From contig NC_134031.1 of NCBI RefSeq assembly GCF_964204645.1, positions 1,116,001-1,180,000 on the forward strand: 64,000 nt of DNA, read 5' to 3'. Below the pieces are notes generated by a model. It made no database searches and was not told the DNA's origin. It saw nothing but the letters and a program-made list of their open reading frames with translations. The DNA is from Tubulanus polymorphus (lineage: Eukaryota; Animalia; Nemertea). A program made the translations under genes and the position numbers. Below, in pieces: positions 1,996-34,000 of the stretch; position 1 is the stretch's first letter, and every line of letters starts with the position of its first letter.

Positions 1996-4900
1996 GTGAG
2001 TATTAGAAATGCGCACGCACACAAATCTGTTGATACATTTGTTTCTGATATATGTATATGTTTTATTCAATTGAAGAAATAAAAACCCACTATAACGAAG
2101 TAAAGCTAAAAGACAATCGATGTTTCTACTCATGCTTCAAGTCGTTTTGAAACTTTTTTGAACTGACTCTAAGCATTTGATTTGAAATGTCAAAATCCTC
2201 TATTTGTTTTTGATTCACGATTGTAGGTCTTCTATTTCTCAATTTCTACGTGGATAAACTGATGATTTATGTTTCATTCTTTCAGAGTTCGTCGTTTTTG
2301 TCATTTTGTCGTGAATCTACGTTACTTTGACTTGTTCATCATGATCGTCATTTGTGCAAGCAGCGTTGCCCTGGCAGCTGAGGATCCGGTGTTTGAGGCA
2401 TCACCTCGTAATCAAATATTGATATATTTTGATTACGTGTTCACAGGTGTTTTCACTGTGGAGATGATCTTGAAGGTATTCATGCTGTTACTGATGAAAG
2501 TTTGACTAGAATATCAACACATTTGGGTTAAATCTGAACCTTGCTATAACAAACTCTGATATAAGAATCATCAGTCTTTACAATGCTAGATTTTCATCTC
2601 AAATAAGACAATCTTAGTAATTTCATACTGGATATGACTAACTATCACTCAAACTATCGGATTTCAACAAACAGATTTCCTGGTGCCCTGAAGTCCGTTG
2701 TAAGGAGGTTTCTCTGTATTGATTTTAGGCCTTAGCTATTAAAAATTTAAAGATCATTTTTTGATTGAGGTCACCACAGTGCAACAGGGCCCAGGGTCTG
2801 ATCTGGAACCTGGGAACAGTGATATACATCAACGGGACAGCGTCAACTGTCAGACAGACATCTGAGGAGTTTTAACATAAACCGGAAATTAAAAGATCTA
2901 TTTAATGGTTTCTGAATCAAACGACTGTTAAACAGTTACTGAATGATAAAGCTATGAGAATATTGAATCGCTATTTTTGACGTTTTTTCCCCTATTCTCA
3001 TCGTTCAGGTGATCGATCTTGGAATCGTTTTCCATCCCGGATCTTACTGCCGAGATGGATGGAACATCCTGGATGCTCTTGTCGTGATTTGTGCGTTGGT
3101 CGCATTTGCTTTCAGGTATGTTTTAAAATAATGGGAAAATAGTGGTCTATGTCTTGGGAAAAAATCCTGGTTTCACAAGATTGGCTTCTTTTAGATGTCG
3201 GATAAGTTTAACTATCACTTGCGAAATTTTCTGAGATCCTTAAGCTCTAATTCGAATATACAGTTTATGTTTACACATGTGATTAAGTTTGTAAATGCTG
3301 GTGTTATTTTAGTGCTATGGAAGCAGCTAACAGGTAGTTTCTTTATGAAACTGTGCATTCAATAATCAAGATGCATTTATAATGTATTATACTGACAACT
3401 TCTATATCCGCGCATGTTGAATTGATGACTATTGCTGCATATATAACTGATTTCAAATAGAATGAACTAAACATGCTTATAAGGGTTTAGTCTGAATGCC
3501 AGATAAGCTGATCTTACCGGTCACCCCTAGAACAGTATAAATACCAGCTGATCTTACCGGTTACCCCTAGAACAGTATAAATACCAGCTGATCTTACTGG
3601 TTACCCCTAGAACAGTGTGAATACCAGCTGACCTTACTGGTTACCCCTAGAACAGTATAAATACCAGCTGATCTTACTGGTTACCCCTAGAACAGTATAA
3701 ATACCTGCTGACCTTACTGGTTACCCCTAGAACAGTATAAATACTAGCTGATCTTACGGGTTACCCCTAGAACAGTGTGAATACCAGCTGATCTTACTGG
3801 TTACCCCTAGAACAGTATAAATACCAGCTGATCTTACTGGTTACCCCTAGAACAGTATAAATACCAGCTGATCTTACCGGTTACCCCTAGAACAGTATAA
3901 ATACCAGCTGATCTTACCGGTTACCCCTAGAACAGTATAAATACCAGCTGATTTTACCGGTTACCCCTAGAACAGTATAAATACCAGCTGATCTTACAAT
4001 CTTTAAAACAGTATTTCGAACACGCGTAACGTTGTATCGATTTTCTTGAATTCTATTTCGTGCTCTGTTAAACCTAGAAGAAGCAGGTAATGAATATCAT
4101 TTTCTTTAGATATTAATAGTTTTTCCTGTGTCGTTTGTTATTTTACCGTCCGTAAAAGGCAGAAGATTCTCCCCAACACTCTGAATAAACTGCTGTGTAT
4201 TTCTGGGACTGTAAAATAGCAAATTATTTCTTTATTCCTTTAGTCTAAGGATAATATTTTTGATTTTCAATATTGTAATATCCAAGGTTCAAAGCAGCGT
4301 AAGATGTGTTTTTTTAGTTTTATCAATTTTTTCCAGCTGTTTTATTCGTGGATTCTTTATGGTTTTTTATTTCGGTGTAAAAGAGAATATTTCACCTTCC
4401 ATTCAGCATTGACTCGAGGTTTTACTGGAACCGTTATTCACAGCAGGCCGTTCCTGGGGGAAAATTGAGAATGTGAAAATTGAAAAGGGCACCAAACAAG
4501 TTGAAAGATCTGTTTTTGAGAAAAAGTTGGTTCAGATATGTCATTTCAGTGTGGATAACAATTTGTGAAAAACTCTGTCCATGCTGTAACAATAATATAG
4601 AAGATCCTGCACTCAGAGAAGAAAAATGAGTCTGAAAATGTTGCCTTTAGTTCACGATTTATTTTCAATGTTTTGACTTTATCCTAATAGTCATCTTCAG
4701 GAATACAGATAGGAGAAGGTAGCTTAGTATTTCTAAAGATGAATATAAGGATAATTGTCAAAACATCAAAAATAAATCATTAGCTAAAGGAAACCTGTTC
4801 AGACTTTCTTTTTCTTGTCCAGGTGCAAGATTTTATATATTCAGTAGGATTTTTGATTATAAAAAAAAATTCAAATTCTATCATTTTGAAAATAAGTAAC

Positions 4901-7900
4901 GGGGCATGTAAACCTATCACGTTGATTGACAGGTGGTTCAGCCCCGCCTCTTATTGGATTGGACGAATCAAGGTGGATTATTTTCTTTTTTCGGTGGTAA
5001 CCATCATATAACCTGAAACTTTCCTTCGCTTGATTTTTTAAATCTACGTTTTAAGCTTTTTCAACAACGATATTTGTGCATCTTGTTATTATTTCCTTTT
5101 CCATATAGCTATAAATCAGATGGGTAAGTTTGTCCAATGTCATCGTGCCATTGTGTTCGACCAGTTCACAGCAGTCTTTAGCTTATCCCAGACTAATCCT
5201 GAATGAACTAAAGATGTGATGATAATTCAGTAATTTGATCATCATTTAGAACAAGAGATTCATTAGTATAGTGCAGAAGGATAAGGCACTGCTTTGAATA
5301 ATGCTCAGTTACAACTCCACACTCACTCACACACACACATGAGGTCTCACACTAACATTCGATTCATTGATCCTTCCCTTCTATACACATCATATTACAT
5401 TCAATTCATCCTGATGATATTGAAGAAGATGAGAGTTTGATTTAGCGCAAAAAGAGGATAGAAAATTGATAGAATTCACTAGATGTATTTGTAAAGAACA
5501 CTTGAATGAATAATGTTTCACTAAGATGGGCTGTTGTAAATTGAAAAGAAAACTTGTGTTTAGTCGTTTAGAATTGTGCCATTGTCTCTGCGGTGAAATA
5601 CTATTCATTTTGTTTTTAGATGTTCTTAAATCTTTCAGTAAAAATTCAGTATTTAGATGAATGAACAATGACTTTGAAGATAGCGTTCTCGTAATTAAGC
5701 TACACCTACACTACCCACTGTTGGGTAGTTTTAAATCCTTTTAACTTCTAGTACTACAGAGATCCTGACCCAAATCACCCTACAAGCAATACGCCTAAGG
5801 GCAGTTAAAAAAAAACAACTTTTCACTACCTTCATTCAAAATGACTGCTAACCTTAACCCTAGCTCGTTGCCAACCCTAGCACTAGCTCACCCATCACCC
5901 ATAACCCTGTTCCTAACCCTAGGTGGCATTTCTGGGACTTGAACCCGAGACCTCCTACACGCTGGGCCAGCATGCCAACCATTAGACCACCAAGTCATGG
6001 TGATTGGAAGAGTTTGGTGGTTTGCCTTGAATGAGATGAGTGACCAGTCAATGGTGATCAGTCAGGTGTGGTTTTGACTGATCGTCAAAGGTTCTATTCA
6101 CTAACAATACCTCTGATTACAAGAAATGACCCATTGCCAGCAATTTCTATTCTAACAAAGGCAATTATCCACTAGTTAAGCAAACTCATCTTTTAGAAAA
6201 ACTAAAACATAAAAAGATACAAAATCATATTATAACCTCAAAACAATAATTTTGCTAGATTTCGCAAACAATCCTTCAAGAACGACTATTTTGCCAATTC
6301 AATCGACCATATTTTGTACAGATGATAGCATGACACTGTTTGAAAATTAGTTTTGGTGAACAGAAGTTTGGCTACTGGGGGCTTTGGTCCTGAGCAAAAT
6401 TTAGTTGAATGTAATCCTTACAGTGCAGAAGAATGGTGTTGATAATGCATCCATGTATGATTTTACTTACTGATAAACAATCTTTGTCTCCAAATAAGTA
6501 AAGGGTATAGATCAAGCTAGTCTCGGGATCAGTTGCGACGAGTACTCGATGCATGTAGACTTAGCTTAGAATGGTACCGGTATAGGAAGCATGTTTACCG
6601 GAATCTGACTGTGAATTCTGAGCAGGAGAAAATGTTTGTCAGTTTCTGCATGTGTTTCAAAACAGAAAAAAGTGGGGAAAATGCTGGTTTTGATGTGAGG
6701 AGAATTTTTAATGATTTGTAACTAAATGTGATTCATACATTAAGATCTTGTACTTAACCCAGTTAAACATTTATATCAAACATCGGTCAAATACAATCTA
6801 TTTTTCAAAACTTATTCCAAAATTAAGAATAACAGTCATTCAACTATTCAACTGGTCAAATATTTCAGGTATTTATGATTGAATCAGTTTTGATGAACTA
6901 CTGTTTAAGAGACTGATCAATTCCCAACCTAGAACTGGATCCTGTATTAACACAATTTTTTATCTTGCAGTTCTAGTTTGCACGCTGTATTTTCTGTGTT
7001 CACGTATTGATAGATTCCGTATTTTCTTTTATTATTTCAGTGGCAGCACTTCAAACAACGGAGCCACCAAGAATTTAAACATGATCAAATCATTGAGGGT
7101 ACTGAGAGTGCTTCGACCGCTGAAAACTATCAATCGCGTGCCAAAACTCAAGGTCAGAATCTACTTTTCAATTTATATCTTCAATTACGTTATAAACATG
7201 TATGTTTTGAGATGATTTTTTTTATTCAAAGAGATTTTTGTCATAGTTTTAACTAATCAGTAAAAGTTTACTCATCACATCATTTCGATGAAGGTAAGAA
7301 ACCAGTTCCTTGATTCTTGGTTAAGTTTGACTCTAAAGAGTTAAAGGGTTAATGAAGCCCCTCATCAATGTATACTGTACGATACTGAAATCAGTTCAGT
7401 TTCAATGTTTTAAACTCTCTTTGAGTTGAACATTAATCGGGAAGTTTGGAACTGGATGTTTCTACAGTAGTATCTATTTACCCCGGAGTGGATTGCCTCG
7501 GATTATAATGTACCCCGCTTGACAATGTATTCAAAAATGTCCTTCCTCCGATTCTATCCCCGCTCCAACTGCCCGGAATTTACTTATTAACTCACAGAGA
7601 ATTTATTTGTCCCGCGAAATCCGAGGCAAACTGTAACTCGCTGTTCGACGAATTCGATCATTTTTCCAACAGAAAAAAAAGAAGTTGAAAGCTCTTTTTT
7701 TTTTTACAGCTTCACGTCGATGGCTCGGTATTGACTGATACGTTGAATGTTTGTTTGAATTTCAGGCAGTTTTCGATTGCGTAGTGAATTCCGTAAAACG
7801 AGTCACGTCGATACTCGTTGTCTATTCTCTGTTCCAATTAATTTTCGCGGTTGTCGCCGTTCAGCTTTTCAACGGCAAATTTTTCTACTGTACAGATATG

Positions 7901-10900
7901 TCCAAAACGACCGCAGAGGAATGTCAGTAAGTCATGCTGCGGTGATAACTGATGGAGCATGACTAGAAATAAAACTCTCCTCCGTCCGGACCACATGTAG
8001 TCATCCAACGATGTATATATATATATATATTTTATATGTATAATTCGATGTAAAGCTCGGTTCTCGCTATAGATTTGTGTTGATGAATCGCTTACTGTTT
8101 TCGCCGCTCTGAAAAATTTAACTTAACGATTTGAATTCTCAAATTTAACTCGTACCTGTAGTAACTGTTCAGCCACAATTTGTATCGCATCTTAAGGAAA
8201 TATTAGATTTTTAAACTTTAAACTAACGCCTGTTTAGGTCCCGATGAATCTAACTTACAGCAGTATATAATTGGTATGTAACGCTAAAACAAGTCCAATA
8301 ATTTGAATTTTGCAATTTTGATTTATTGATAAGATCGTTTAGTAACATATTCTGACTTGTTAATTGCATTGAACTCTAAGACTCGATCACTTTCTGAATC
8401 ATCATTTCCAGTAACTGCCTAAAAATAAATCAACCTGAAAAAATCAGCAGAGAAAAAACATCTTCACTAGACCTGAACAATAGGGTTGTAAGATAAATGC
8501 ACAATTGCAGTAATTAAAATCATTGCATATAAACCAATAAATTTGTTGTTAGTGAGTTGATGAATCTATATTGAGAATACAGCTGTGATCCTCTAATTCT
8601 AGAATCTATAGTGAGAATACAGCTGTGATCCTCTAATTCTAGAATCTCAGTTGATTTATTATTTTTATTCCCGTTAGTTCCTGTAGTAGAATACATGTAT
8701 TCGATGATTATCATTACGAACCACTGATTGTTTCCTGTTATTAGTTTTAAAATACATCGATGTCATTGATTATTAGGTGGTAAAAAGCTTCTTCGACTGC
8801 AATCGGATACAAACATTCATGAAACGCATATTAGAACTAATAAAATGCAGTGGTATTTATAATTCGTTTCAGTATCCGAGCTGTTAAAATAGACTTTTTT
8901 TTCTGTTTTTATTATTTTTACCGAGTGTTCAGATTTGCATGTCATCTGCCTACTAATTATAACTAGCAACTGGTACAAACGTAATCATTTACAGATTAAA
9001 TTGTTACTCATTCCGGGAAAAGGTGCAACTCTGCTACAATCCAATGGGGTCCAGACAATCCTGCCTCAATGTTGACGAACCCATTAAACGATTCTTGATT
9101 GACCTATGAAAATGAATTGCACAATTTGCTACAGAATCGGGCATTTGATTTACATGCGTATGTTATGTATCTATGTACATGCATATTTTATGTATTTGTG
9201 TACATGCATTTGTTATGTATTTGTGTACATGCATATGTTATGTATATTTGCATATGCATAAGCTCTTCCTCAGAAGAATGTCTTTGTGCCTAATTTTCCA
9301 CCAAAAAAATATTTTGAGCCTCAGAACGATCTGGTCACTGTCCTCATCTGTTTTAAGATGCAGCTGTAATTGCTGTGAGTGTCGTCTGTGTGTGATTACG
9401 ATTGTAAAAGTTGATGATGTTTTTGCCTGGTGGAGGTTGATACACTTTGCTTTCAGGTTGTCTCCTGCGACCTACGACGCCTGCCCGCGTGTCCGCGTGC
9501 GTCTCATACTGTGCACTGATAACTGTCTTTATGTTAAAACAACAACAAAAAATTACTTTTCATGTCCTGGCCGTATCTGCGGACAACCTTCTCGATCGAG
9601 AGATCAAATAGCGCGAGATTAGAGCGATATTTCTCTTATACAATTTTGTTGTTTCTTGTCTAATTTCAGGCTGTATTTCAATGCCTTATCAATTCAGTAA
9701 AGAATGTACTGAACATCATGGTAGTTTACATGCTGTTCCAGTTTATTTTTGCTGTTATCGCGGTCCAGTTGTTCGAAGGCAAATTCTTTTATTGTACTGA
9801 CCAATCAAAAGACACCGAAGAACAGTGTCAGTAAGTGTGGTTACTATGGTGACAGATTTCGCAAGATTTTCGGCTCATGAAAAAAGCTTCGATTAATTTT
9901 TTTTTTTTTTTCTTTAATGTTCGACATTGAAAATTTTTACCGATTATCCTCTCGTTTTCGCAATGTGATTCTTCACACAACTAGTTAAAAATGTGGCTTT
10001 GAATTTCTTTGTGCAGTCCGTCGCTTGCTCAACCCTTTCAAATTTCTATCGTATCATTATTACTTCGTGATTTTTAAAGAATATTGATTTTTGTCTGAAA
10101 CGAAAATACGTGAAAATCTACCCACTAAATCCACAGTTCTCTAAACTCTATACAGTTAATTAACTCTCCTATCATCACTGCTTTAAACACAGTCTAATTC
10201 TTACAGTTTGTTCACCGACAATTTTTATCAGCTTCTTCAAATGATATCGTACACCCCAGTAATATAGAATCCATGCACACTAAGAATAAACAGAGTCCAG
10301 GATGTTTACCTCGGTACTTGTGCTAGTATTTATTTACCCTTTTAACAACATCTTTATAGTCTTCTAGAAGTCTCTTTGTTCTAGATTATAAATGTGTCTT
10401 GTATTGCTGATAACTATTAGGATATAGTCGAAATGTTTAGTAAACTACAGCTCAAGGAATCATTCCGCTCCCTTTCTTAATGTGTTGGATTTTATATCAT
10501 CATTACAAAACGGACTCGCAGATTCTTCAAATTATCTTTAGAAGAACTATGTATGCTCTACATAACACCCTCGACTTCATGTATTTCAAATAATTGAGGA
10601 TGAATTATCCCCTTATTTTGGCGATAACTGCATCTCTTACACTACGAGGACTTGTTCATTATTTCTGTACCTCTGTTTCTAAGCGATGCAGGTCATCCTC
10701 CTCCTTAAGATATTCATAATTCATTCATTCATGTTTGGAACGCACAGCCACATTTCCATCAAAACAACTCGGCCTTCGTACAGTCTGTGAACATTGTACC
10801 AGTGACAAAACGATCTCGGCTTAGTTAAGTTTGTATGCATGGATATCTAGTTATATATGTGTACGGTCCGTGTTTTAGCTTTATCCCCCCTCACCCATGT

Positions 10901-13900
10901 AGAGTCAATGTTTCGCATGCATTCGGCCAAACAAATATTATTCAACACCGCTTCAAAAAACGCTTTTATTGTAACTTAGATCCATCAAACTTAAAATAAT
11001 GATCGCATAAAATCGCTCTTTCTAATTTTTTCGTTTGTTTGCGACTGTTTTTACGGAGCACGAATTGTTATTTTTAGGGGGCAGTATTTCGTGTATGAAG
11101 ATAATTCCGATACGCCGAAAGTGGAAGATCGCATGTGGAAAAGTCAAGATTTCAACTACGATCACGTTGGTTTAGCTTTGCTTACGTTATTCACTGTAAC
11201 GACAGGAGAAGGTTGGCCACAGTAAGTACATGTGTGACACTGGAGTTATCAAGACTGCGTTTGTCACCGAGCAGATTTCCCCTGGATTATCATGTACGTG
11301 CCCCTGACTCTGCTTGCCATAGAGACAACTGTCTCTGATTATCACGTGCCCCTGACTCTGCTTGCCATAGAGACAACTGTCTCTGATTATCACGTGCCCC
11401 TGACTCTACTTGCCATAGAGACAACTGTCTCTGATTATCACGTACCCCTGACTCTTCTTGCCATAGAGACAACTGTCTCTGATTATCACGTACCCCTGAC
11501 TCTGCTTGCCATAGAGACAACTGTCTCTGATTATCACGTGCCCCTGACTCTGCTTGCCATAGAGACAACTGTCTCTGATTATCATGTACCCCTGACTCTG
11601 CTTGCCGTAGAGACAACTGTCTCTGATTATCACGTGCCCCTGACTCTACTTGCCATAGAGACAACTGTCTCTGATTATTACGTACCCCTGACTCTTCTTG
11701 CCATAGAGACAACTGTCTCTGATTATCACGTACCCCTGACTCTGCTTGCCATAGAGACAACTGTCTCTGATTATCACGTGCCCCTGACTCTGCTTGCCAT
11801 AGAGACAACTGTCTCTGATTATCACGTACCCCTGACTCTGCTTGCCGTAGAGACAACTGTCTCTGATAATCACGTACCCCTGACTCTGCTTGCCATAGAG
11901 ACAACTGTCTCTGATTATCACGTACCCCTGACTCTGCTTGCCATAGAGACAACTGTCTCTGATAATCACGTGCCCCTGACTCTGCTTGCCATAGAGACAA
12001 CTGTCTCTGATTATCACGTAACCCTGACTCTGCTTGCCATAGAGACAACTGTCTCTGATTATCATGTACCCCTGACTCTGCTTGCCGTAGAGACAACTGT
12101 CTCTGATAATCACGTACCCCTGACTCTGCTTGCCATAGAGACAACTGTCTCTGATTATTACGTACCCCTGACTCTGCTTGCCACAGGGCTGAATTGCCTT
12201 GGATTATCACATGCCCTACATGACAAAATGTTAGAAATTGAATGTTAAGAATTCTCCCCCTATCCGTCGTCGCTCTGATTGCTCCAGATTTCACTCGTCT
12301 GGAAGAACATTCGTTAGTCCCAAGCGGAGTCTACTATATCTATGGATATGTCATCATGTGTTTGTATGATTATAGGGTTCTACAGCATTCGATGGATGCC
12401 ACTGAGAAGGATCAAGGACCGTCGCCCGGAGCTGCTATGCAGATGGCTATTTTCTATATCGTGTTTTTCATCGTGTTTCCGTTTTTCTTTGTGAATATAT
12501 TCGTTGCGTTGATCATCATCACATTCCAAGAACAAGGAGAAAATGAACTGATCGATCAGGACTTGGATAAAAATCAGGTTTGAAAGGAAACTTGCTTCTC
12601 GAAATCAAACGGCAGCTTGTCTCGGAATCAGAGTTAGCGCTGACAACTCATCTCAAGCTCACAACCCACGTCTGCCAATTTAACTGATGATCTTATTTTC
12701 TTTTAATCATTTTTCAGAAACAATGTATCGATTTTGCGATAAACGCGCGACCACTTTGTCGATATATGCCTAAAAACAAAGATTCGTTGAAATATCGAAT
12801 CTGGCGTCTGGTTGTATCAGCTCCGTTTGAGTATTTCATCATGACTATGATCGCTCTCAATACACTTATACTTATGATGAAGGTAAGTTTTAACCATTTA
12901 TTTGGTTCTCGAAGAAAAGATTGGATTTCAAATCTAGGGCCAAAAATTCCCGGACCCAGTTCCACGATTATTGGTAAGTTTGAATACAGTTCATTTCTTA
13001 TGTAGCTCTGTTGAACTGGGTCCGGTCTTGTAGTTATGGGTAACAGAAACAATTGAACCTGTTTTCGTGAATGTTCGACTGTAATACGCTACAGAGCCCG
13101 GTTTTATGAAAAAGTTTGAACTTACAACGATCGAGTTTGAAATGTTGAAAAACTGAAGTTACCAATGGCAATTTGACAAAAATAAAATTTAGTTACAATT
13201 TTTCATGAAACTGGATCCTGAACTAGGAACAGTCTATATAGTTCAATAGCTTCAGTACTGATTCTGTATATCACAGGATAGTTTTGTGAAATTAACAAAT
13301 TGTCTCTTTCAGTGCTTATAAAGTGTATATTTGTGTAAAATGACCATCAGTGCAGACGAAACCTGAGTTATAGTGAGCTAGATTATATTCAGGGTTCTTC
13401 AACCACTAATTTAGTTGTTAATTAATATAGCGGTCAAATTTGTATCACATAATTGATGAAATTCATGTCCGATTCGAGTATACAGGGCCTTGTTTCATAG
13501 AGGGTATCAAAGTGACCTGTAGGTGTAAATCCTCAATCTGGCCTTGGTTTCAAAGACTGGGTATCAAAGTTTCCCCTTGGGATAAATCTTCAACCCAGGC
13601 CAGAGAAACCATGGTAATACTGGAGAAATTTCAAAACGTTCCCAGGGATTATTTTACCTTCATATCTGTGAAACTCGGCTCTGGTTGTTACTATTATGTG
13701 GTGCATATTTGTCAAATTCGACAGTTTTAAAATGATTATATAGCGACCATGATCTCATGTTATTGTCATAATTTTGAAGCTAGTTGAACCGAAAGTTTCC
13801 GATCAAAAGTTGTAAGTTCAGAAAGATCATTCTACTGAAGAAAGCTCATGGTCGCTACATGTGATTTGACTTAACATTTTTATAATTTGATGAATTAACG

Positions 13901-16900: not shown

Positions 16901-19900
16901 TCAAACCTTTATAGTTCTATGGTTCGAGTATTCAATACAGAGAAGTGCTGAAAAACCTAAACACCGCATTCACCGTACTTTTTACGATTGAGTGTATATT
17001 GAAGCTTATGGCCTTTGGAATTAGGGTAAGCCTGCGTCCGTACGCAAACACGACAACACAAAACAGCGTCTAGAGGGTTAGACCTAGTGTGAACAGAACG
17101 TGGCAGATACTCGTGTAGACGCGCACAACAACTACAACTACAAAATGTTCTTCGTTTTAGAAAATTTGTCGTTTTCACTATTTGTAGTACACAACAACAA
17201 CTCCATCCATCGATGTGGTCCAATTCTCAAAGCATTTTCGTGGAAGAGCTTATAGTCACGCCACATGTAGCCGTGGGTACTGCTGTACATGGTGTCACGC
17301 CATGGTGCAGTGGGTACTGCCGTACATGGTGTCACACCATATTACAGTTGGTACTCTCATTCTGCTTAATGTGGTATGACTCTAAGATTATAAATCTGTT
17401 CTATGCATTGTTCACTATAAGGTCAACCGTTCGGCTCCAACTAACCTTCTATTTTGATTTCTACCTCCCGGGGTGCCTTGAGATTTAGCATGTGGTTTTG
17501 GTGGCTCCTCATGCCCTATTGCTTCTCCGTGGTTTAGGGTTTAGTCGGTTGTTGGTCTCTTTCCTCGGGTGCAGGGTTTTCTATATTTAGCACCACTAAC
17601 TATGTTATTATCAGTGTTTATTCGGTTATTTTTTTACAAATCAAATGAACTGACAGCTTCTGATTCTGTAGTCGGAAGTTTTCAGTTACGATGGCCGCGT
17701 GAATGATTAGAAATGATGAACTATTGTACATTTTGCTGATCTCTGAAACTTTCATAATGCCTGGAGTTTGTTTCACCATCGATTCTGTACACAGTTTATA
17801 TATAGATAACTTCTGGTCTTAAGTCACAACTGTGCAACTGGAGCCTTCAGTCTAAAATCGTGGTTCTGATACAGGCTCCAGGTTCAAAGTTTCCTTACAT
17901 GATAATGATTTATGCAGTAATTCTAAAACTGCTACCACTACTGCTGCTGCTGCTACCACTGCTGCTGCTGCATCTGCGAGAGTTCATCAATTTCAGTTCA
18001 TGCGGTCATCGTTTCAATCTCGCACAGATAAACGGTTAAAGCATCTTTATCATTATTTTTCTTTTCTTTCCGTCACATGCTTCAGCACCATCAAGACCCC
18101 GCTACTAAGGACCATGCAAAATTTGAACGATACACTTTGGCCTTAGCGTATTTGAATATTGCATTCACGATTATGTTTACGATCGAATGCACCCTGAAGC
18201 TCATTGCGTTTGGACTACGGGTATGACCAGACTATCGAAGCAACAATTTACAGATATATAAATATTCATATATTTATATATATTTTTTTATGCCTTCAAT
18301 TCGACGACAGTTTTGAAATGATCGACGCGGTTTCAAAGTTGGCGAGCGGCCATTTCAAAAATTAGTCTCGTAGAAGGCATGAATTTGATGAAGCATACTA
18401 GATCACGTGTGACAATTGAAAGTTGTCTGTTATTGAAATCTTGCGTTTCAACATTCTGTTTGTCTCGTCGTCTCAATATCTCGGCTTTTTGATCTGAAGA
18501 ACGTGTGACATTTTACTGAATCGCTGCTGGACACAATTTATACACAATTCACTGATGATGAATTATCAGCATACCTTTTGATATTATTGTACTGTGAAAA
18601 GTGCTTTTGAAATGGCAGTGATACAGTCAAACTTGCACAAGTCATCATGAGATAAGTCGTCCTGAATAACTGAACTCATCTTAGTTTGAGTCCTAAGCCC
18701 CACCCCTTCCAATTCAATTTACTACTAAGTGTAATCAGTACGATGATCGTCCCAACTTCCACGACTTAAGCAGCGAGTTTGACTTAATTACTGGAAAAGT
18801 ACTGTGTCATATCTTATTGAATGCGTTTTCACATCATTTCATCGATATTAGAATGTTCTTCGCTGTCCACTAATTCCTACGTAATACCCGCCGCGACAAT
18901 TCTTCAATTTGAATGATGTTCTGAGTTCTTGGTCAAATTGCCGTCGTATACAGAAATTCTTACAATCTACTGCATGCTCAATGAGGAGTGTGATATCATA
19001 TAATAATCAAAACTATCTCCCGGAAATATCACTGTTAGCAATATCATTACACTCTTCTCTACTTCGTCTTTGTGAATGTTCTCTCTTTCTCTCTTCCAAT
19101 TCATTCAGTTCCATTTCTCGGCATGTAGTATATGCTCTTCCTGCGAAGATGGCCGCCTCGTTACTTCTCCCTATTACATCATCGTGATTAATATCTGGTT
19201 TTGATTGTGATGTCATATACAGAGGCAGCCTTCGTTTCTAGAAGGGTTTATAGTTTGTATTATGTATATATTACTAACTGCTATGAAAACCTTCAGACTT
19301 TGAAATAATGGAATGGAATTGTTAATTCTGCTAAGCTTTGGATAATGAAAGGAAATTCGATTGATTACTAGTTTCCTCAGCATGTGTCTCTTACATAGCC
19401 AGTAAAAAAACTCATAAGGAATATATCATAACCTGCTTTAGTATATGGCTGTCTGATTTTTGCATGTTTTAATTCTGGATTCTTGCTGTGGTCCATCGAA
19501 AAGTTCTAGTGGAAATCATTGTGGGCTCCATGAATATCTAAATCCCGCACGGACACAATTTCCACCGGGAACATAACTCTATCTGCATGCTAAGCCTTCT
19601 ACTACTAATATCGTATTATTTTCCTGTTAGGAATCCATTTCAAAATGGTTCAGGGTTATATCAGATTGAAATAAACACATTTTGAGCTCAAAAATATGCA
19701 TTATTCATCAGGCATTCAAATTAGAAAATAAAAACAAATGAAATATTTTTTTCTTTATTATATATTTATGCCTTCTGTTCCATTCTAATGTGTATATTGA
19801 TATGTTTGCGCAAACTTTGATTCATTTCCAACTGTTTGTTCTATATTTACTGGTGAAGGGTATTTCATATATCATACATATATCTTTCTTATTGTAGTTA

Positions 19901-31000: not shown

Positions 31001-34000
31001 TCATGGCCTACCGTATTGCATAGAAGTAAACAGTAGAAGATGGAGTTGGTGATTTATTTTATGAATACCACTATAAACACTGGTCAACTATAGCTCGATG
31101 CCAAAATCATTATCATAATATATACTACATTTTCATATTTACATTTATATTATCTGCCTTCATTTTCTTACAAAATATAATCTTGAATTTGTTTATCTAT
31201 TTTGCTATTTTTAACGATGAATACTACATTGTATTTAGTCCTATGGCGTCATATTTATCGGGTTTCAAGTTCAACTTTTCTAACCCTCAAACAAAAGACT
31301 TGTACTTTATCGTCAAAGATACTTCACAGGATAGGTTACATGCAGTTATGATGAGAAAGATTTTTTGTTTTCAAAGTATTAAGAAAACTAAAGCTATGAA
31401 TTGAGACCGAGCATGGAATTAGTTAGCATATATGTATAGATATATAGTAATATGTTGCTTAGAACATCCAATAATTAGTTTTAGATAAATTTGAACTAAG
31501 CGGACATAGATACATACTGTTATTGTTTTATGTGTTGAAGCTTGAGTCATCATTTAGGAATAGATCGTACAACGTTTAGTATTTAGGCAAAAATGTTATG
31601 ATAGAAAAAAAAAACAGCAGGTTATATACATATTTCATGTGCTGAATGATAGATAATATGCTTATAAATGCTCTAGGTGCATGTTTGAATGATAGTAGCT
31701 TAAAGCATGATAAATGCTTGAAACCGATATGATATTATTTTGCTTTGATCTTTACTTCAAATTTCAGCTTTCAGCATCAACCTCGATTCATTTTGGAGAC
31801 TCGATCCGTTCTTTGATTGTAGCTTAATACGGATTGATAATGAATTCATATTTGTTTTATTTCCAGTTGAAGAAATGGATCGTAAAGATGATGAATTCCG
31901 AGAGACCATACGTCGAATGTGGCCGATTCAAGCGAAGAAAATGCTGCATTTATTGATGCCGATTGATGACAGGAAGAATCGTATGATTGATAAAGATCCA
32001 GGTCGGTTTCATCAACAGAATCAATTACTTCATCCCGCGCCTTTTTTGAGAACGTCGGTTCTGCATCGGTTAGAGATGAGTTATGAACAAACCCGTACCC
32101 ATTTCCCTTTGCTACACCAGGGCTGGATCCAGACCGTAGCGCCTGACCATCGTGCTATTAGTTTGTATTAAAGGCAAGACATTAGGCTGAACCCTGACTG
32201 AAGAGTAGGTACCGGGCTGGAACTACAGTCGAGTAGCTGTCTGGTCCCTTTCTGTCCACAGTCATTGTGCCATTCGTTAGAACATATACCACAGAAAGTT
32301 GCTATAAAACTGTATCAGCTCAGAGGATTGCAGAATGAATAAAGAATATTTTGTCTCGGCTGGAAAAGTAGCCCTTTCTGTTGGTTCTATGGTCAGAAGT
32401 CGCCCCTGGATCCACCTCTGTACAGATACCAGTTCTAAAACTTAAGTAGAATGATTATCAAATAGACATCAAAATCATTGTACAATAAACAGAAAACAGA
32501 TTTATTTGAATAATATCACTGAGTGATTTTATTTACTGTATCCTATTATCAGTCATGACGGCCATATCATCGGGTAGAAGTTTCCTATCACAACCAAAAC
32601 AAGGTTTGTTTCATCATTAATTGACAAGAAAAAAACAATCTTTTCTTACAAATTTCTCTTAATTCTTCTTTCCAATTTGCCGTGTCATATCATATTTGTG
32701 TATATCGATATTTATTTCAACTTCAAGATTCCTAGATTTTCATGTTAAAAACATATTCGTTATCAGTATTAGATATTTAATCAAATACGATTTTCTATTC
32801 CAATATTCCTCGGCATGTATTTTTCATGTAATCTATATGTGCTATGTTACAATACTGTGATACATAGGTGTAGATTATTGAATTAAAGAAATACCATTTT
32901 CAGACATTTTCATAACTATGATATTTGTTGATAGCTCGTGGGAAGCCATGTTCTTTTTACCTCTGTCTCGTCACCATTCAGGAATTTATTTGCACCTTTA
33001 TCTCGTTGGTATTTTTACTACATGTTTTTACCACAGAAATAATCTCAAGAGCCGAGTTGCACAGTCGTGACTTAAGACCAAAAGAGGTCATACATCTGGA
33101 TGCTGGTCTTTAGTTGTTAGACTCATTGGAGAATCATGATGGTCTATGAATGGTCTTGAATCTAAGGCGTGACTGTGCAAGTTGGCCGTGACGCGACTTC
33201 AGATCCAAGCAGATCCATATTATCACAAAAATGCAGAAAATGCATATATAATTCTTTTTCTTTTATGATTCAGGATCCAGTTCCACACAAATTAATTGAT
33301 TTTCGATCAGTTAACTCTGAATCACATCTCGCAACTGTGGAACCGGGTCCGCGCAGAATCTGCTTCTGACGGTGATGACAACGTAATACATGATTTTCAC
33401 TCTGCGTTTACGTTTTATTTTCAGACACGCCGAATCACCGGTTAACTGTCGGTAAAATCTATGCAGGGCTTCTAATTGCTGAGAACTGGAGAGCGTATAA
33501 AGCAAGCCAGTCAAAAATAAATCATAAAGCTGTAAGTATGAAATGAAGGGTATGAATCGATGGTGTAGCGTATAAACATACACGTGTTATAGTAATTGAA
33601 TTGTATCTGATATGATGAACATGTTTGATGATTGTAGACTAGTGTTTGGTGAATCTAGTGAAATACCGTAAAACACCCCCTCCCCCCCCCCCTCCCCCTC
33701 TTTAAACCACCCTTCCAAATGCTTTGTCGACCCCTATGCTTTAAGTACTGAATGGTGTTATTGAGAGAATATGGGCACACGTTAGGTAACACAGAGGACT
33801 ACTGTAAGCTCAAATGGAACTTTAAGTTGTTCTATGAATGTGGTCCCAGTTCCACAGTTGAGAAGCTTATACCCGTAGTTCAGGAAGTTGGTAAAGTTAC
33901 CCATCGAATAAATCAAGGATGTTTGTCCCTTTTCAATTGTGCTCGTGCAGAAGACATTATCGACTTTCTCTTTCACTTGCCATGTTTAGAAGTCTCGGCC

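Follow-up and report, generated by a model that had tools for sequence, protein, structure and literature searches.

Most invertebrates have a single Cav2 gene to serve all their fast transmitter release, and alternative exons are therefore their main route to diversity of this channel. Here we describe a candidate for such a route in the nemertean Tubulanus polymorphus, within a 64,000-nucleotide stretch of contig NC_134031.1 (assembly GCF_964204645.1, positions 1,116,001 to 1,180,000; this whole stretch is called the window below and is numbered from its first letter). Two tandem 161-nt exons, designated A and B, lie there in the domain III part of a Cav2-type gene, flanked by the S4 exon on one side and the P-loop exon on the other. 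Among the closest described systems is cacophony (cac) of Drosophila, likewise a single invertebrate Cav2 gene with equal-length, tandem-duplicated exons, whose two mutually exclusive pairs (IS4A/IS4B and I-IIA/I-IIB) are used one at a time and give isoforms with distinct presynaptic roles (PMC11828482, PMC12370356). The fly pairs lie in the domain I voltage sensor and in the beta-subunit binding loop, whereas A and B belong to a domain III pore module, and the fly pairs are proven by RNA and genetics and conserved across arthropods, whereas A and B are a candidate pair identified in genomic sequence. A second precedent comes from molluscs, as the Cav2 gene of Aplysia was found to have one mutually exclusive pair, located at IVS2 and common to Crassostrea (oyster) and Octopus, and none at IIIS5 (PMC5818475). 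This Cav2 gene, too, comes from a lophotrochozoan and carries a tandem exon pair, but the gastropod Bulinus has a single IIIS5 exon. As a separate observation, the window also contains two similar, IVS2-like open frames at 16915-17070 and 18032-18223, which match the published mollusc IVS2 pair.

More distant relatives offer a likeness in what is exchanged. The 12a/12b exons of invertebrate Cav3 (domain II S5-P turret) and the pore exons of NALCN resemble A and B in swapping part of the pore module and outer turret of a four-domain channel (PMC4436565, PMC9741552), although they concern other families and other domains, and their swaps alter turret length and cysteine content or a filter residue, hence Na/Ca preference. 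The vertebrate pairs 8/8a, 21/22 and 31/32 of Cav1.2/Cav1.3 and e37a/e37b of Cav2 are also tandem-exon substitutions in high-voltage-activated channels and arose as independent events (PMC9741552), but they cover IS6, IIIS2, IVS3 and the C-terminal EF-hand region, and none covers the IIIS4-S5 linker or S5. Across human and fly Cav genes one survey counted ten independent tandem-exon events, every one in a different exon (PMC9741552), and one event is listed for C. elegans, in cca-1 (PMC4165533). An earlier reading of this DNA made without database searches (hereafter the sequence-only reading) had held that the known mutually exclusive pairs lie at other positions, and the published record agrees for the cac IS4 and I-II pairs, the mollusc IVS2 pair and the human and fly events (PMC12370356, PMC11828482, PMC5818475, PMC9741552); our literature search for a mutually exclusive pair at Cav IIIS5 found none. 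The A/B pair would accordingly appear to be a further case of the well-known tandem-exon kind at a position not yet described, seen in one genome.

Exons A and B are adjacent paralogues of equal length and equal phase with intact splice sites. Their encoded segments match at 38 of 53 residues (72%) and their DNA is 65% identical; the local alignment between them scores 49, a value reached by 0 of 300 shuffles (8.9 +/- 1.4), and the similarity ends at the exon borders, beyond which the 300-nt flanks score like shuffles. Both exons start in phase 0 behind the same ...aatttcag acceptor and stop at the same gtaagt donor, leaving over two nucleotides (CA) whose codon is completed by the first G of the 11078..11221 exon. 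All splice sites around the pair are ordinary GT-AG, and the polypyrimidine tract is stronger at B (0.76) than at A (0.55). The reading frame is destroyed by joint inclusion and by joint skipping alike: with A and B joined a stop is reached 10 codons into B, and with both skipped a stop follows after 6 codons. The 15 residues at which the two segments differ fall in the S4-S5 linker, the coupling element between voltage sensor III and the gate (7), in S5 (3) and in the turret start (5), the net turret charge after QLF is -1 in A and -3 in B, and both turret cysteines are retained in each copy. The coordinates, phases and gtaagt donors that the sequence-only reading had given for the two exons proved exact, its translated linker strings agree with ours, its turret charges were reproduced on recounting, and its statement that including both or neither exon breaks the frame is confirmed by the early stops found in our local frame check. 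The outer boundaries of both adjoining exons were adjusted, the downstream one ending at 11221 and not at 11222, where its GTAAGT donor begins, and the upstream one most likely starting at 7041 or at a nearby AG (Table 1).

Table 1. Positions in the window of the exon pair, the intron between its members and the neighbouring constitutive exons.
Feature	Position	Strand	Content
Upstream constitutive exon	7041..7152	+	Domain III S4 end; phase 0 at its 3' end; donor GT at 7153
Exon A, 161 nt	7766..7926	+	Domain III S4-S5 linker, S5, first 16 turret residues
Intron A-B, 1743 nt	7927..9669	+	
Exon B, 161 nt	9670..9830	+	Protein segment equivalent to that of A
Downstream constitutive exon, 144 nt	11078..11221	+	Remaining domain III turret and P-loop; selectivity-filter glutamate (TGEGWP)

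The predicted protein identifies the gene as encoding a Cav2-type calcium channel alpha1 subunit. The A and B segments score best against human Cav2.2, Cav2.1 and Cav2.3 (75-84 bits), compared with 48-59 bits for Cav1 and at most 41 for Nav and Cav3, and a tree of the exon places both inside the Cav2 group, apart from the Cav1-like rows (98/95 support). The P-loop of the gene, which fits the TxEGW form with its filter glutamate, reads TGEGWPQ and is of the Cav2 type (TGEGWP), an IQ-type motif occurs in an open frame at ~33394-33543, and the last coding frame ends in DSDEDDWC at ~55909. An acidic ...WC C-terminus is described as the scaffold-binding (PDZ ligand) end of Cav2 (PMC7456537). Together, the bit scores, P-loop, IQ-type motif and DEDDWC end agree with the assignment to Cav2 that the sequence-only reading had made. 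The window covers channel domains III and IV as well as the C-terminus, and a domain II-like S5 (L008) lies ~6 kb upstream of the window. A separate Cav1-like gene is located on another contig of the same genome and is distinguished by VVQCVI..., by TFEGWP in its P-loop and by a different exon split; as it divides IIIS5 differently, the 161-nt unit is specific to Cav2. In that Cav1-like gene (L005; G000:C3:9983645-9986749) one IIIS5-region exon ends in ...GVQLFK, with FQGTFQHCTDSSKLTEKEC following in another exon ~360 nt downstream.

The pattern of divergence between the two exons indicates that their tandem duplication is old. Identity between A and B is 74% at first, 87% at second and 34% at third codon positions (third-position chance 26%), 5 of 16 four-fold degenerate sites match, and the flanking introns, taken over 300 nt to each side, resemble each other no more than shuffled sequences do; third positions at chance and unalignable introns imply that neutral sequence has become completely random since the duplication. 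Neither an indel nor a stop has entered A or B, and the equal length, the AG, the full GTAAGT and the S5 hydrophobic pattern are all intact. In 5000 runs of a neutral simulation with at least 0.33 substitutions per site, 38 of 53 residues were kept in at most 0.02% (P<2e-4), and at 0.33 substitutions per site the open frame survived in 13%. Purifying selection has acted on both copies as an average since the duplication, which is not a measure of their present state. The simulation (P<2e-4) and the codon-position pattern reject the idea that either copy has drifted neutrally for most of its existence, and the prospect of one exon evolving neutrally, which the sequence-only reading had named as a result that would speak against the pair, is not borne out over the post-duplication average. 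The dN/dS comparison suggested there could be carried through in part, with dN between A and B amounting to 0.22-0.26 and dS saturated beyond estimation.

Comparison with 192 aligned Cav sequences from across animals, nearly all of them Cav2, revealed that the two copies depart from the common pattern at different places. The linker of B has Q at position 4, where 189 of the 192 have D, and L at position 6, where 190 have V, together with I7, and its S5 and turret are near canonical. Exon A keeps the canonical AVFDCVVNS linker sequence and departs further along the segment, with R at position 12 (N in 191 of 192), S at position 15 (N in 187 of 192) and an unusual S21. The Q at position 4 is the Cav1 state and is present in the Cav1-like gene of this genome and in Cav1-like fragments. 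This complementary divergence would fit a pair with divided or specialised roles and would also be compatible with somewhat relaxed constraint. Both copies have V10 (NSVK), where nearly all others have L (NSLK), which is the sole hint, and a slight one, at a duplication within their own lineage. Each copy resembles single-copy orthologues from other phyla (44/53 and 42/53) more closely than it resembles its partner (38/53), and the branches of the two in the exon tree, built on 53 columns, are long (0.53 and 0.41; median 0.21), that of A being the longest. The 53-column tree is otherwise unresolved and leaves the sister relation of A and B undecided.

The unit that was duplicated is itself widespread. 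Opening with GC after an AG and closing before a GT, a single copy of the 161-nt exon separates the IIIS4 exon from the P-loop exon in Bulinus truncatus, Helobdella robusta, Bugula neritina and one further invertebrate contig, with introns of 106-710 nt around it in those four loci, and the annelid Dimorphilus likewise has one copy, fused to the next exon; in five other genomes the orthologous S4 exon directly precedes that of S5. A single 161-nt exon in other phyla means that the duplicated unit is an ancient exon and that its duplication is no general spiralian feature, and A and B are probably a lineage-restricted tandem-exon pair. The sequence-only reading had proposed a comparison across invertebrate Cav2 loci, and the five non-nemertean loci compared each have the single exon, with no second species found to carry the pair. 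Protein searches comprised one exhaustive HMMER search with exon A (best 150 matches listed) and three word-indexed searches, with the A frame, the B frame and a 219-aa transcript fragment (best 120 matches listed for the last). Neither the A signatures (KRVTSI, YSLFQL) nor the B signature (AVFQCLI) occurs among the 376 Cav sequences collected.

Two observations made during these comparisons stand apart from the pair. The top match of the exhaustive search, a 121-aa Logan fragment (P0001), repeats the first half of the IIIS5 exon internally (MLFFVFFQAVFDC...MLFFVFFQAVFDC...), probably through a short-read assembly loop and not a biological duplication. In the Cav2 locus of Dimorphilus gyrociliatus (GCA_904063045.1; L010:4504-4548 and 4847-4930) two S4-like matches (LRAIRVLRPLKLV...) lie ~300 nt apart and may be an S4 exon pair of domain I comparable to that of flies.

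From this evidence we consider it probable that A and B stem from an old tandem duplication of one 161-nt exon in a single-copy Cav2 gene, that both copies work, and that the mRNA takes one or the other. In such a model an ancestral exon encoding the S4-S5 linker, S5 and extracellular turret start of domain III would have been duplicated in tandem, both copies would have been retained as working coding exons, and each mRNA would contain either A or B. Transcripts with A+B or with neither would reach an early stop, make no channel and presumably be removed by nonsense-mediated decay, and the outcome would be two channels differing at 15 of 53 residues, with tuned gating, and perhaps a tuned outer pore, as the likely effect. 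Mutually exclusive use is most likely in view of the frame logic, the constraint on both copies and the precedent of the systems described above, and we infer the decay of mis-spliced forms and a functional difference between the A and B channels. The stronger 3' splice signal of B and its more canonical S5 and turret faintly suggest that B could be used by default, with A under regulation.

Other explanations of the pair can be weighed against this model. That the second copy arose through misassembly or represents an uncollapsed haplotype is practically excluded, in agreement with the sequence-only reading, which had held an artefact to be unlikely given the divergent flanks. DNA identity between the copies is only 65%, their flanks are unrelated, and contigs from two samples of one study carry both, each continuous with its own differing introns and at even depth; we found no point in favour of an artefact. 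Three runs cover the stretch, none of them on record as RNA, and their contigs cross the exon-intron borders without joints and are hence read as DNA. Two strong copies of the exon, and no more, are present in the window and in the 268-Mb genome, and a third, decayed copy, sought in both, was not found. In the deepest run heterozygous bubbles occur at 6900-7014 and 9001-9114 and none inside A or B, a sample too small to mean anything. A different account holds that one copy, with A the likelier candidate, once served as an alternative exon but has dropped out of the transcripts, a relic retired so recently that it has not decayed. The alteration in A of two asparagines that hardly ever vary (N12 and N15), its longest branch and its poorer polypyrimidine tract would suit such a history, as would the missing RNA support for either exon, but the open frame, length, AG and full GTAAGT of A are intact though the surrounding intron has diverged to randomness, both cysteines and the S5 hydrophobic pattern are retained, and constraint must have held for most of the time since the duplication. 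We regard recent retirement of one copy as unlikely.

It is less probable still that both exons are used in a manner that is not strictly exclusive. In that case double inclusion or skipping would be a regulated, non-productive way of lowering channel output, and protein diversity would be secondary. Both mis-spliced forms do reach an early stop, and the 1743-nt A-B intron is long enough for splicing, so steric hindrance cannot enforce exclusivity and nothing structural bars double inclusion; however, a purely regulatory exon needs no conserved protein, whereas both copies show protein-level constraint. Several observations weigh against the model of two working, mutually exclusive exons itself. 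Neither junction has RNA support, the sole candidate RNA run of the species having no contig on the locus, and recent silencing of one copy would as yet leave no trace. The long branches and the changes at otherwise invariant residues could reflect partly relaxed constraint instead of specialisation. Among the 376 collected Cav sequences no A-like or B-like orthologue was found, a set in which no nemertean was recognised, so that the negative result does not show such orthologues to be absent. No convincing competing RNA pairing of the docking-site/selector kind was found in 7153-11077, where the inverted repeats are short, imperfect or A/T runs. GCATG motifs occur at the background rate, with no enrichment.

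The sequence-only reading had suggested two pore modules that would differ in gating, permeation or toxin sensitivity. If both exons are used as the favoured model proposes, the positions at which they differ point to gating as the property most readily affected. Single changes in the corresponding linker of the homologous sodium channel Nav1.5 shift its activation and make recovery from inactivation faster (PMC5339511). These mutants support the general idea that the domain III S4-S5 linker tunes gating. The Nav1.5 residue N1325 may align with position 4 of the A/B exon. A switch in ion selectivity between the A and B forms appears unlikely because the filter exon is shared and the turret length and cysteines are unchanged between them. 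An effect on peptide-toxin binding is speculative, and a link of these exons to omega-conotoxins is weak; the classic conotoxin determinants presumably lie mostly in the next, constitutive exon (11078..11221). About as likely as not is the broader proposal that an animal with a single Cav2 gene swaps its domain III coupling-and-pore module, between a Q4 form and a form with two rewritten asparagines, to give physiologically distinct presynaptic channels and, with the other exon clusters of the gene, a combinatorial set of isoforms.

The introns of this region contain several repeats. Tandem repeats in the A-B intron comprise a 40-nt unit in 2.2 copies at 8562-8647 and a 25-nt unit in 4.7 copies at 9143-9260. 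In the intron downstream of B, at 10258-10549, the summed contig depth rises from ~30 to 4,500-42,000 with many loose ends at 10405-10449, and this segment looks like a high-copy interspersed repeat or a mobile-element fragment. The intron directly after the domain III P-loop exon holds a 48-nt minisatellite of 18.5 copies (95% match) at 11296-12183, which reads as a 336-codon open frame and might mislead gene callers.

In the wider setting of channel evolution, the A/B pair adds an independent case to the rule that four-domain channels repeatedly acquire tandem exon duplications at new exons. Its practical weight is modest at present. The two linker versions differ at residues that hardly ever vary, and they therefore constitute a natural experiment, with ready-made mutants for studying domain III coupling. 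If the proposal of distinct presynaptic channels is true, splicing would do within the one Cav2 gene of this animal what vertebrates do with three Cav2 genes.

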